Assembly (NCBI GenBank): GCA_964035545.1
Contig: OZ037772.1
Span: forward strand, 10,972,818-11,036,817
DNA from: Bugula neritina
Taxonomy: Eukaryota > Animalia > Bryozoa
Reading direction: 5' to 3'
Length of the DNA: 64,000 nt
In this document: positions 309 through 21,495 of the stretch, in pieces
How positions within the stretch are numbered: position 1 is the stretch's first letter
How the letters are laid out: each line of letters begins with the position of its first letter
Position numbers and translations under genes: made by a program
The notes under the pieces: generated by a model
What the model was told of the DNA's origin: nothing
The model's input: only the letters and a program-made list of their open reading frames with translations
Databases searched by the model: none

Positions 309-3300
309 TCAGTCATCTTCTCCTGAAGAGCTCAATGAATCTTTGGAAGCATAGAGGTCATTGTCAAGCATCTCCACTCTGGGTTTATTAACGACTGCGT
401 ACACAACTTCACCACCTTTTTCTTCCTCCACCTTATTAGGAGCTCTAAAACACAATTTCTGTTTTTCAGCAAACATAAGAATGTAATCTGTATGGTGGGT
501 GTGTTTGATAATTGTATATATAATATAAACTACCACCAATTTTTATAACAGCAGTGTAATTAATATTCTACTATACAATAGTTTCAACTGATGACATTAC
601 TATAGCAGGTACTTGCTGACACTACAAAGTAAGAACTTGTTGACACTACACAGCATGTAGTTATTGAGACTATATAGTAAGAGCTTGCTGACACTACACA
701 GCAGGTAGTTGTTGACACTATACAGTGAGTGATTGTTTTCATTAAAAAACTTTCAATACTCACGTATATAGTATATTATATATCTTTTTACAGTTTTAAC
801 TTATACGCAGTTTTTGCAATACCATGCAGGTACTTGAAGTATTAAAAGTACTGAGTATTTTTACATTTTGACACCCCTAATTAAAATTGTAATATGTATC
901 AGCATGCTGTTGTACCCTTACCCCTCTACTCTCGCTTTATCCACCACTGTTTCAGTGACATCAGTAGCAGGTGCTTCCCCAGGTTTTACTGCAGAGTAAT
1001 GCAAGTCTACACCATCAACTCTCACATCCTCTTCTGAATACTGAGTTGGTGTCAATTCCACAGAGGAATAATCCATACCTGCAGTACATTACCAAGTAGT
1101 ATTATACCTGCAGTACACTACCAAGTAGTATTATACCTGCAGTACATTACCAAGTAGTATTATACCTGCAGTACATTACCAAGTAGTATTATACCTGCAG
1201 TACGTTACCAAGTAGTATTATACCTGCAGTACACTACCAAGTAGTATTATACCTGCAGTACATTACCAAGTACTATATTATACCTGCAGTACATTACCAA
1301 GTACTATTATACCTGCAGTACATTACCAAGTAGTATTATACCTGCAGTACATTACCAAGTAGTATTATACCTGCAGTACATTACCAAGTACTATTATACC
1401 TGCAGTACATTACCAAGTAGTATTATACCTGCAGTATATTACCAAGTAGTATTATACCTGCAGTACATTACCAAGTACTATTATACCTGCAGTACATTAC
1501 CAAGTAGTATTATACCTGCAGTATATTACCAAGTAGTATTATACCTGCAGTACATTACCAAGTACTATTATACCTGCAGTACATTACCAAGTAGTATTAT
1601 ACCTGCAGTATATTACCAAGTAGTATTATACCTGCAGTATATTACCAAGTAGTATTATAATTTATATATTCAACTTTGCATGAAGTTGATAGCAGGTAAT
1701 TGTTTAATAAAAATCACTATTAAACTTTTTTAACTGTATACACACTTATTCATTGTTGATCTTATCTGATAGAATTTTATAGTACAGCTCTGCTACCCAA
1801 ACAGGACAAAGGGGAGATAACTATAAGTGAGGATCTCATATAGTACAGCTGTTCTTGAAACAATTTAAGCTAATTACTATGTACTACCAGAACTACCAGA
1901 ACTACCAGAACTACCAGAACTACCAGAACTACCAGAACTACCAGAACTACCAGAACTACCAGAACTACCAGAACTACCAGAACTACCAGAACTACCAGAA
2001 CTACCAGAACAACCAGAACTACCAGAACAACCAAAACTACCAGAACAACCAGAACTACCAGAACTACCAGAACAGGACAAAGCAGAGATAGGTTAGAAAA
2101 TATGTACATGTTACTGGTGGCTGGCTTCCTAATCCAAAATTCTATAGATATATTTTAGAGCATTTATTGTATTTTATTTTATCCTCACATGCTGTAATTT
2201 ACCTTTTACTAACTTTTAGCTGTTATGGATTGGGTCTACAGTTCATTAGGCTATAATTGATATAGATTTTACAGCTTTTGCTGTTGAAATAAATCTAAAG
2301 TTATTAGAAAATGATCCATTTTTTGAAAGAATGACAATTTTGTTGGATCTAAATACAAAGAAAAACTTGCACCTCTACTTAATTATGTAACAATTAAGTA
2401 GCCAAACATATTTTCTGTTCCAGCCATATCATTTATCATCATGATTTATCCTATATTCCTATTAGGTACTATATATGTTTACATTTACTCATGTTTTCAA
2501 GAAATATTTATTACGTACACTATAGGTTTTCTGTGAGGTTTTAATAATTGATCCCGGCCAAGTCAAAATTTCCAACATAACTTGGACTGCAAGTTATAGG
2601 TACATACTATTTGCCATACCTTCGGTGTAGAACTTGCCAGTAGTTCTGTTGGATGGTTGGGGCGCTAAATCAGATGCGATGTCCTTATCTTGTATTATGT
2701 CATCAGTATTTCTACTAAAGACAAAACAGAAGAACGCTACATATTGATACTTTTTTATGCCAGATGGCATGCTATATAATAATAATTGTTGCAAAAGCAA
2801 TAGTTTGTAAAATAACATGTTAAGTTAGATACCATGTTGAAATCACGCTGTCTTTACACAGAAATTTTTAAAACCTTGTACTCAGTATATTATTCCAAAT
2901 AAATTTATTGTTTACTTTCTGTCTAAATATTTAGTATGACATTATTGAAAAGCATCAAAATATTCATATATTCCTTACAGACAATTAAATGATATCTCAT
3001 TGCTACTGTTTATAGAATATTTCTGTTTTCTCATATACCATATAATGTACTTCTATTAGGTAAAAACAGTATATTGTTTATAACTATTGAGCTATCAAAT
3101 ACCAGGACCTAAAAATATTTGATGAAAAGGATCTGCTCTAGACATATATCATGTAAAAACTATAGTTTTTAAACTGCATTAAGGTTACTATAATGATTAT
3201 TTTAAATCAAAATAAATCGGCAATTTTATCAGGAAAATGACTATAATTTGTTATTTATATGCATTCTAATGAACTTCATATAATTTACAAAAAAAAACAT

Positions 3301-19100: not shown

Positions 19101-21495
19101 GTAATAATTAAAGACAAAAGCTGTTGAAACATATAGCTATGTGTAGGCCTTAATTGTATCATATTGCAGAACATACTATATATTATATGCAAAGTATATT
19201 GTGAATGTTTGCAATAATTTGGAGTAAATAATTAAAAACTATAATGATATTATAGTTTTTAATTATTTACTTCAAATTAAGCAGTTATATATAGCATACT
19301 ATGCTATCTATAACTGCTCAATTCTATATGATGTATGCAAAATAACTTCAAATTACAAACTGCGCTATATAGTGGACATATTTTCAAAATCTTTGTATAA
19401 GTGACTTTTCTATACTAAATTATTACCTGCTTATTTAGTTTGTTACCAACCTGTATATTTTAGCATGAAGCCAGTATAATTGTTGCTATTGTTAGTTTTA
19501 AACTCAAACATCAGAGAAGTAGCTGATGAGTTGATGGAGAGATTCTGAAGAGGAGGTGGCACTTCCGTGTCATAGCAGTGGTATAGCTGGTTGTATATAT
19601 CATTAACAATTTCATACAATTGAAATAAATCACCAGAAGATCCACATTCTGATGAAGGTCCGATACCCATAAATATAAACTCTACATGTATTTCTGTAAC
19701 TCCTCTGATGACTGTCAGGTTGAGTCTATTATGTAGATTGTAACCATAGAGATTAGCATACTGTATATTAAACCCTTCATGACTCATGATGTAACCACTT
19801 GGTGACGTGACTACTGATACAGTTTGAGCTGATGATGTCATAGAGTAGAGTGGCAGAGCTGTAACAGTTTTAATGAGATGAAACTAAATACCTAATAAAA
19901 CTGAATAGCCTATATTCAAAAGTTTTCGTAGGTTGCAAGCAAAGTTTTTGTCAGTATAAAGAATAAAGCAAAAACTTTTAATATAAAATATAAAAACTTA
20001 ACAAATCTATATTTTAAAAAATATATTGTTGCCAACAACTACTGTAGATAAAGAACTATAGCAATATATAGATATATAGCTAATAGCTAAATATACATAT
20101 AAATATTCTAATGCTGTGTAAATGAAGTTTGGCAGGGATGTTTTAAGCTTATATATAGTTCAAGTTAATTATTAAATCAGCTAAAACAATTTATTAAAGT
20201 ATATATTACCTGTGAAGGTTAAGGTAAATCCCTGTGTAGAACCAGCAAGTAACTTGAATGTAAGACCTGATTGACTGCTTAGATGATGTCCATAAATGAT
20301 TATATCATCATCATTATTCAGACTACAGTTGTGTTGTTTGCTAGAAATATTACCACCACTAGAGTCTACTATGAGGTAATCAATCTGACATTTAGATGAC
20401 TCATTTCCAAGGTTTCTCTGAACAATTCTAAACCCAACTCTCTCAGTACTTCCTGTGTCTATATTTATCTCACAGTCATGTGATATATTGTAAGTAGAAC
20501 TGGGGTAGTCTGGACTGGTTATGTTGATAGAACTTCCAACTCTGTAAGATATGTTCTGTACTGAGTTGGTGCAGAACTCAGTCACATTCTGGCAGTCTAA
20601 AATATTTAAATAACAATAAATATAATTTGAATTACATAAATAGTATTTCTATTCTCACGCAAGTTTACAGTCGCTATCTCTGTGAGAAAACTTTTGATGG
20701 AAGGGGTTTTTGTTAAAGCGGGCTAAAGACTTATTCGTATATGTAGCACAGGAGTAACTATGACTGGATGCTCTTTATAATGTCACCAGTGGCCTTTGAT
20801 TGTCAGAGCTTGAACCCATGACTTCATGCCTACTATACGCAAACGCTCTAACCCCTAGACCACGGCTGCTCATGAATACTATTTCTATTGACATGAGTAT
20901 ATTCATCAACAGAAGAAAATAATTGACAAATTAAGGTATAGTTGCATAATATATGCAACTATACCTTTTATTATATAGTATTTAATTATCCAAAGTTTCA
21001 AAGAAACAAATTTTCTGCGAATAAGAATTATAATTAATATAATATATAGTGAGGATTGGCACACACTGCACTTGTAAGCATATATGTAAGCATGCGCTGT
21101 GTGTATAGCTGTTAACACATTTAAACAAACATATATAGATAAGCAGCTAACTAATGTCTTTTGGTAGCAATATCAGGAGATAAATGACAAAATAATTTAC
21201 TTCTATTGAAGTTTTGTTATAATACATTTTATACAATACATAATATTATACATAATGTTTTATTATACACACTATACTTAATATATTATACTCATTATAC
21301 ACAATATATTACACACTATATACAATATATTACACACTATATACAATATATTACACACTGTACACAATATATTACACACTTGTATACCTAACATATTACA
21401 TACAATACATTATAACTCAGCATATTATACTTACTGCAGCCCTGTAGAACAGTCAGCATGATAAATAACCAGAGAACTTGATTACAGGTAGACAT
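16071..21495 (-). CDS. CUB-CUB-mucin-TM receptor with ITIM-like motif (paralog C)
   Basis: Exons: signal 21435-21495 (MSTCNQVLWLFIMLTVLQGC); CUB1 20210-20596; CUB2 19451-19858; stalk 18850-18987 (GC donor AAG|GCGAGT); TM 18185-18335 (IIAVAAGGSGLILVIVIIVLACLLCRE); cytoplasmic 17494-17588, 16611-16731 and 16071-16203 (ILYAVVNKPKVEMIDNDLYASRESLSSSEQNE-stop). Confidence 0.82.
17750..18040. repeat. Compound microsatellite (GTGA)n-(GCCA)n-(GTCA)n
   Basis: Directly visible; intronic in receptor C. Confidence 0.95.
20662..20869 (-). mobile_element. tRNA-derived SINE copy
   Basis: Reverse complement of GCAGCCGTGGTCTAGGGGTTAGAGCGTTTG..GGGTTCAAG (Pol III A and B boxes) plus a body shared with the other copies. 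Confidence 0.8.

Follow-up and report, generated by a model that had tools for sequence, protein, structure and literature searches.

Receptor families in which related ectodomains are paired with opposite tyrosine-motif tails are established for immunoglobulin (Ig) and lectin proteins of vertebrates. To our knowledge such families in invertebrates are described mainly from the Ig-type receptors of Botryllus and Hydractinia, and we know of essentially nothing described for the immune and allorecognition genes of Bryozoa. Here we analyze three tandem receptor genes, termed A, B and C, in a window of 64,000 nucleotides from the bryozoan Bugula neritina (C8:10972818-11036817 of an assembly of 216,009,554 bases; positions without a prefix are in window numbering). 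Together with related copies elsewhere they appear to form a family, restricted to Bugula, of type I membrane glycoproteins with two CUB domains, a mucin-like stalk and a tail of about 120-140 residues, and the tail is of one of two kinds: class I, with an ITIM (immunoreceptor tyrosine-based inhibitory motif), and class II, with a YxNM motif. The results are consistent with a lineage-specific family of recognition receptors whose two tail modules may give different, and probably opposite, phosphotyrosine signals, a reading to which we assign a probability of about 0.45.

The vertebrate paired receptors (KIR, LILR, Ly49, SIRP and the paired Siglecs) resemble the Bugula genes in being clustered and fast evolving, with homologous ectodomains and one subset carrying ITIMs, and also in the swapping of tails by recombination, partial gene conversion of the ectodomain and lineage differences in copy number. 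However, their ectodomains are of the Ig or C-type lectin kind and that of Bugula is CUB-CUB followed by a mucin stalk; the non-ITIM tail of Bugula is long, with YxNM, YxN and YxxL motifs beneath an uncharged helix. Ectodomain identity within KIR-like pairs is also at least 90%, whereas in Bugula it is only moderate. The nearest described system found in the literature, in which we found no CUB ectodomains with ITIM tails in invertebrates, is Fester/FcoR of Botryllus schlosseri, likewise from a colonial invertebrate and likewise lineage specific, with variable copy number, switching of tail motifs and an ITIM of near-identical form (xAYAIV versus xxYAVV). The FcoR receptors are members of the Ig superfamily with ITIM tails LAYAIV and VAYAIV, their switch is between an ITIM and a hemITAM (half of an immunoreceptor tyrosine-based activation motif, ITAM), and YxNM is stated to be absent from them (PMC12582321). 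A further difference is that recognition and signaling chains are separate gene pairs in Botryllus and lie on one chain in Bugula. DAP10 and the immunoglobulin tail tyrosine (ITT) motif are of the YxNM type (PMC12582321). The invariant YENM of class II fits this form, the dual docking motif for Grb2 and PI3K p85 seen in CD28, DAP10 and ITT; unlike in those proteins the tail that holds it is long, has four or five more conserved tyrosines and belongs to the ligand-binding chain, and no homology is implied. An earlier note on this DNA, made without database searches, had recognized no named family in the architecture, and this holds: the family matches no characterized family and no paper describing it was found.

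Self-comparison by tblastn and blastn found three paralogs on the minus strand, all of them in window 1-22000, and no copy in 22000-64000. Gene A spans 309-7307, gene B 9525-13967 and gene C 16071-21495, all exons given below being on the minus strand. The region is AT-rich (G+C about 31%) with many introns, and exons were called from open frames, conservation among paralogs and splice phases, with junctions verified exon by exon; homology searches were run per exon, the sole multi-exon protein used being the public model P0031. The three genes share an eight-exon plan consisting of a signal peptide, CUB domain 1 (phase 1-1), CUB domain 2 (phase 1-1), a Ser/Thr stalk, a membrane helix and a tail of three exons, whose phases are 2-1, 1-2 and 2-end. 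Every one of the 24 exons is open with matching phases, giving models of 508 (A), 506 (B) and 497 (C) residues, and AG/GT borders are found at all junctions except for one GC donor that closes the stalk exon of C. The shared exon layout proposed in the earlier note is thus confirmed by phase-consistent models, in which the tyrosine motifs it had named in all three genes are in frame.

Class I comprises A and C and, from other genomes, L010, L012, L013 and two copies in L009. Its membrane exon (A, 3335..3473; C, 18185..18335) encodes an uncharged helix with a Gly-rich start; the C exon agrees with L009 and L012 in its acceptor position and in where coding starts. The first tail exon is 95 nt long (A, 2620..2714, phase 2 to 1; C, 17494..17588) and is fast evolving in A. 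Tail exon 2 carries MDYSSV and LHYSAV in A (922..1078), and in C (16611..16731) an Asp replaces the tyrosine of the YSSV of its relatives. YSSV opens this exon in most class I genes and fits either an ITIM (I at -2) or an immunoreceptor tyrosine-based switch motif (ITSM; T at -2), depending on the copy. The class I terminal exon reads VVYAVV, DLYAS and stop in A (309..444) and ILYAVV, DLYAS and stop in C (16071..16203). In all six genes with a sequenced end, from three genomes, it has the same order of an acidic stretch, (V/I)(V/L)YAVV, NKP, DLYAS and a Ser-rich acidic end, the motif taking the form VVYAVV, ILYAVV or VLYAVV and lying downstream of the membrane helix in the phase-consistent models. 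The ITIM consensus (I/V/L/S)xYxx(I/V/L) is therefore both present and conserved in class I tails.

Class II comprises B, the genes D and E on the plus strand at C8:10.535-10.546 Mb, about 430 kb from A/B/C, the sibling-lineage contig L006 and the public spliced model P0031. The membrane exon of B (10608..10707) has no relation to its counterpart in A and C and encodes two Asn residues, as first reported; the class II helix has Asn and no Lys, Arg, Asp or Glu. Tail exon 1 of B (10038..10135) carries YEQM, tail exon 2 (9810..9948) HRYSVV and NYMN, and exon 8 (9525..9633) YENM and NYVG, followed by six out-of-frame codons in C-type sequence and a stop. These exons are common to B, D, E and L006 at 75-95% amino-acid identity, and the tail of about 110-130 residues holds five invariant tyrosines, in YEQ(L/M), HRYSVV, YMN, YENM and NYVG, none of which has the ITIM form. 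YENM occurs unchanged in B, D, E, L006 and P0031. Of the motifs listed for B in the earlier note, the cores of YENM and NYMN are conserved and YEQM, although present, is unique to B, every other class II gene (D, E and X included) having YEQL. After the NYVG exon, whose donor NYVG|GTAAGT matches the consensus, D, E and P0031 have a ninth exon that ends in HVYSSL (L001:9247-9336 and about 9540-9610; L003:6182-6271 and about 6445-6510). D and E do not differ at all in this ninth exon, and the intron before it differs by indels. The resulting tail end, YVGM, ten residues and YSSL, appears ITAM-like and not canonical: the form YxxL/I, 6-12 residues, YxxL/I is departed from by Met at +3 of the first half, and B is without the second half. 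A search with the class II tail (P0031 residues 186-353) found no relatives; a Pfam match of this tail to GAPT, a Grb2-binding adapter, scored 14.2 bits, under the cut-off, and is taken as chance.

How far the motifs can serve as evidence depends on more than their occurrence. In composition-preserving shuffles two ITIMs in A have p 0.03 and one ITIM in C p 0.16; in B, two YxxM have p 0.013 and YxNM p 0.03. Taken singly the motifs named in the earlier note are marginally above chance, and it is their conservation and confinement to one class that carries the case. The ITIM consensus is limited to class I and YxNM to class II, with a YS(S/V)V motif opening tail exon 2 in both. The xxYAVV form recurs in six genes from three genomes and the YxNM/YxN set in four to five genes, and within class II the motif-core positions are invariant at 17 of 19 sites versus 58 of 90 elsewhere (p 0.054). 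The genome also holds at least 30 SH2-coding exons.

The ectodomain exons encode CUB domain 1, here D1 (A, 6143..6526; B, 12855..13241; C, 20210..20596), and CUB domain 2, here D2 (A, 4094..4495; B, 11752..12150; C, 19451..19858). Both are divergent CUB domains, far from the Pfam consensus: on single exons the CUB entry (PF00431) is not returned for D1 and scores 14.5 bits for D2, both results lying under the cut-off. The tandem CUB assignment of the earlier note nevertheless stands, on sequence for D1 and on profile, language-model features and predicted fold for D2. A HMMER search of D1 against 1.84 billion representative proteins gave ten hits; below two close Bugula fragments these are mostly multi-CUB proteins (P0003, P0004, P0005, P0008 and P0010; E 5e-10 to 5e-4), and against a hidden Markov model (HMM) of their 37 CUB domains D1 scores 34-40 bits, covering the SPxYP, CxW-like and CxxDY blocks. 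The best solved matches of the D1 profile are CUB domains of MASP-1. For D2, a six-row profile matched only cubilin, and a 24-row profile matched cubilin at E 1e-8, then six entries that are all MASP-2 or C1s, and nothing else; its language-model neighbors fall in CUB clusters in 24 of 30 hits. The AlphaFold model of D2, made from exon 3 of C, has a predicted local distance difference test score (pLDDT) of 77.8 and a predicted template-modeling score (pTM) of 0.76, and it matches solved CUB domains of TSG-6, C1r, PCPE-1, neuropilin, MASP-1 and Kremen at template-modeling (TM) scores of 0.55-0.67 with E from 3.5e-6. A D1 model from a seven-row alignment, too shallow for the purpose, reached a pLDDT of 37.7, and profile-profile comparison of D1 with D2 detected no similarity. 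Both cysteine pairs are present in D1 of A, C and E, the first Cys of the first disulfide being Arg in B and D, and D2 retains the second pair only; the first pair is missing from many true CUB domains.

The chief alternative is that these are CUB receptors of the endocytic or scavenger type, whose tail tyrosines are YxxPhi signals that bind AP-2 and whose tail classes route the protein differently through internalization, recycling or basolateral sorting. Cubilin, which gave D2 its best match among solved structures, uses its CUB domains in ligand uptake. A bulky hydrophobic residue stands at +3 of nearly all conserved tyrosines (YAVV, YSSV, YSAV, YSVV, YEQL, YENM and YSSL), and YxxPhi is enriched in B in the shuffles (p 0.02). 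Sorting would not, however, require the class I residues at -2 and -1 (V/I and V/L) or the Asn at +2 of YMN and YEN, all of which are invariant and are needed for recognition by the SH2 domains of ITIM and Grb2 binding. Six tyrosines per tail likewise exceed the needs of sorting, and fast ectodomain diversification with changes in copy number is unusual in housekeeping uptake receptors, so that we regard a pure sorting function as unlikely.

The size and distribution of the family were obtained by searching the genome in six frames, with single sequences and also with profiles, which returned five D1 and five D2 copies, those of A, B, C, D and E; the search for further paralogs and the classing of their tails thus added two class II genes to the one in the window. 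The same searches found one distant single-copy gene on C5. Outside this genome only three close relatives of D1 are present among the representative proteins. The D2 profile retrieved at least 17 more variants, which after clustering at 90% identity all differ from one another by 10% or more; their sources are JGI Bugula metagenomes or the NCBI draft genome of 2020, and one 27% relative from an ENA metagenome was found in addition. The D2 variants form two fully supported clades, one A/B/D/E-like and a larger one C-like, and no outside variant is more than 81% identical to any reference copy. The closest public proteins are hypothetical proteins of Bugula neritina. Non-coding DNA around the positional ortholog of A (L010) is about 88% identical, which indicates that the outside Bugula data come from a diverged cryptic lineage, and the NCBI draft contig L009 holds at least three C-like genes in tandem. 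In current data the family is confined to Bugula-like samples, and its copy number varies between lineages.

Comparison of A with L010 shows where the protein is held constant. The terminal exon is 93% identical with a ratio of non-synonymous to synonymous divergence (dN/dS) of 0.19 and the membrane exon 90% identical (0.21), followed by tail exon 2 at 80% (0.58), CUB2 at 59% (0.64) and tail exon 1 at 53% (1.5). Constraint falls on the ITIM exon and the helix and spares the ectodomain and the membrane-proximal tail. Among paralogs D1 and D2 have dN/dS of 0.4-1.1 with local peaks of 1.24 at D1 codons 76-90 and 4.05 at D2 codons 31-45, pairwise counts that are mutually dependent and come from a small sample. 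The ectodomain dN/dS check proposed in the earlier note therefore gives local windows above 1, which suggests positive selection on the ectodomains; D2 variability did not differ between loops and strands (p 0.40). In the first 75 codons of D1 (window 6300-6524, 13015-13239 and 20370-20594) synonymous divergence among paralogs is 0-0.12 versus 0.18-0.32 downstream, which points to gene conversion across both tail classes. Between classes D1 is 76-81% and D2 51-68% identical, and the class I genes A and C flank the class II gene B within 21 kb. Ectodomain clade does not predict tail class: class I tails are joined to C-like ectodomains in C, L009 and L012 and to A-like ones in A and L010, and class II tails are joined to C-like ectodomains in L006 and P0031 and to A-like ones in B, D and E. 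At least two transfers of whole tail modules between lineages have therefore taken place.

The same selection pattern could suit an adhesion, developmental or gamete-recognition set working in the manner of CDCP1 and DCBLD2, with tails that signal and with neither opposite signs nor an immune role, since reproductive proteins also show rapid ectodomain change. CDCP1 and DCBLD2 are vertebrate CUB transmembrane proteins with Src-phosphorylated tails, and they resemble the Bugula proteins as type I membrane proteins with a CUB ectodomain and several tyrosine docking motifs in the tail. The YS(S/V)V shared by both classes would make their signaling overlap in part. We consider this account doubtful nonetheless. 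The D1 and D2 searches found no close vertebrate or other-phylum relative and no Pfam CDCP1_CUB match at E up to 1, so that a sequence link to CDCP1 or DCBLD is missing along with homologs beyond Bugula-like samples. CDCP1 and DCBLD2 are single conserved genes with no ITIM/YxNM dichotomy, the DCBLD2 tail motifs being YxxP, whereas in Bugula the ITIM is found in class I only and YxNM in class II only. Exchange of whole tails between ectodomain lineages is the pattern of immune-type receptor families, and a neighboring receptor family has ITAM-like tails.

Gene B, the only class II gene in the window, tracks D and E to the codon after NYV and then continues into a C-type terminal exon and 3' untranslated region. 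Window 9411-9530 of B is identical to C at 117 of 120 positions, and the next 1.8 kb of 3' flank is about 81% identical (window 7761-9546 versus 14408-16156). The 97.5% identity of the first 120 bases suggests either that a conversion tract was laid down recently or that the 3' untranslated region is under constraint. The junction in B is two bases shorter than the class I equivalent, which yields the six out-of-frame codons and the stop and leaves the remainder of the ITIM exon (9461..9542) out of frame. The earlier statement that B lacks the terminal ITIM is accordingly right as to the reading frame, no ITIM being in frame, and incomplete as to the DNA, where the exon remnant is kept. No further coding exon lies downstream of the NYVG exon of B within the window, and the ninth exon of D and E is absent. 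B reads as a truncated chimera, with D and E as the intact class II genes. Nor do the class II genes resemble classical activating partners, since their tail is long and bears motifs of its own and their membrane helix is uncharged.

The lone sequencing run matching the B window consists of short DNA unitigs that cover introns, and its one long joint, a 687-base skip, is off the splice sites. The NCBI models of relatives (135, 100 and 353 residues) were predicted by AUGUSTUS using transcriptome hints (PMC7576161). Fragmentary as they are, they agree with the models presented here on the junction that joins tail exon 2 to the terminal exon and on the class II junctions. A mostly silent family, decaying as a by-product of tandem duplication and unequal crossing-over with young open frames and meaningless motifs, would account for the failure to find an RNA run for B, the chimeric B and the GC donor of C, the ectodomain dN/dS of 0.4-1.1 and the fragmentary public annotations, yet it is very improbable given 24 of 24 exons open with matching phases, dN/dS of about 0.2 in class I terminal and membrane exons across lineages about 12% apart in non-coding DNA, a ninth exon identical in D and E despite indels in the intron before it, and motif cores conserved across four to six genes.

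Several observations weigh against a recognition family with opposing tails. The motif counts of single tails barely exceed chance, and YAVV, YSSV, YSVV, YEQL and YENM also fit the YxxPhi endocytic sorting signal. B is truncated and a poor type specimen of class II, and C has two defects, the GC donor and the lost YSSV tyrosine. Whole class II tails have dN/dS of 0.33-0.93, ectodomain identity between classes is moderate, and with five genes the family is small in this genome. A run search with window 9300-14300 found no RNA run containing at least 1/20 of the gene words of B, and there is no full-length transcript-derived protein of the family among 15 billion public proteins. In addition, neither class has a charged residue in its membrane helix, and the classical route to an ITAM adaptor is therefore not indicated.

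The recognition-receptor reading presumably operates as follows, and here we infer expression, phosphorylation, the SH2 partners, the opposite signs and any immune role. The receptor would span the membrane once, with its stalk probably O-glycosylated on Ser and Thr. A variable ligand is probably bound by the fast-diversifying part of the ectodomain, chiefly CUB2 together with the second half of CUB1, and gene conversion would keep the first half of CUB1 alike among copies as recombination moves the two exon-built tail classes between ectodomain lineages. Ligand binding would lead a Src-type kinase to phosphorylate the tail tyrosines, upon which class I tails may recruit a tandem-SH2 phosphatase and damp signaling, and class II tails may recruit Grb2 and PI3K-type adaptors and promote it. 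Cells would thus integrate opposite signals from related ectodomains.

A paired inhibitory and activating arrangement of A, B and C, as the earlier note proposed, is plausible in this setting. Its core is upheld by clustered genes with homologous CUB1-CUB2 ectodomains and two sharply different, swapped tails; the uncharged helix, the long class II tail and the moderate identity depart from it. Because the non-ITIM class has neither a charged membrane residue nor a short tail, the family is classed as ITIM-bearing, modular-tail receptors on a CUB scaffold and is not filed as a KIR-type pair. We think it unlikely that the family extends to a KIR-like variable system on a CUB scaffold, independent of those of vertebrates and tunicates, in which shuffled ITIM and YxNM/ITAM-like tails would set the sign of the signal for self/non-self or symbiont discrimination. 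A CUB-based family with an ITIM tail, a YxNM tail, swapping, conversion and copy-number change would represent a further independent origin of such receptors. Bugula also houses a bryostatin-producing symbiont, which makes surface receptors for tolerance or rejection of practical interest, and the short genes with their motif and exon maps allow direct tests.

The single-copy gene on C5 (L008, C5:4457001-4467000, minus strand, 4243-7326) combines a Pfam-significant CUB domain, a D2-like domain that is 26-29% identical and a membrane helix, and may represent the unexpanded ancestral type of the family. Just upstream of the window (L002 and L004, C8:10953001-10972817) lies a different receptor family on the minus strand, with CUB-like and sushi-like domains, none of which scores in Pfam, and a long Ser/Thr mucin stalk. 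Its tails carry YENL and YESL-ten residues-YETL, an ITAM-like spacing, and one exon has a repeated acidic tyrosine unit of the NEYEF type. Compared with A, B and C this family shows no D1, D2 or tail homology except for a 15-residue motif match.

The remaining exons complete the three models. Exon 1, which in A (7241..7307) holds the start codon and signal peptide and ends in a phase-1 donor, encodes the signal peptide at 13901..13967 in B and 21435..21495 in C. The Ser/Thr-rich stalk is encoded by exon 4 (A, 3839..3985; B, 11441..11662; C, 18850..18987, where it is short). In A three equally good in-phase donors of the A|GTAAGA type would end this exon at 3839, 3857 or 3863. The GC donor of the C stalk lies at 18848-18849, where B has GTGAGT; either the intron is of the rare GC-AG kind or the splice site is weakened. 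Tandem repeats accompany several introns. A 29-base minisatellite at window 1075-1659, with 20 copies that are 95% alike, adjoins the acceptor of A exon 7, and each unit holds CTGCAG|GT, a potential decoy acceptor or donor. Long spurious open frames are produced both by a nine-base repeat of 21 copies at 1883-2073, in the A intron between tail exons 1 and 2, and by an (AGCC)60 microsatellite at 17798-18039, in the C intron that separates the membrane exon from tail exon 1. Finally, 21-base and 7/21-base tandem repeats at 21266-21380 and 21578-21748 flank exon 1 of C, one just within the first intron and the other just upstream of the start codon.

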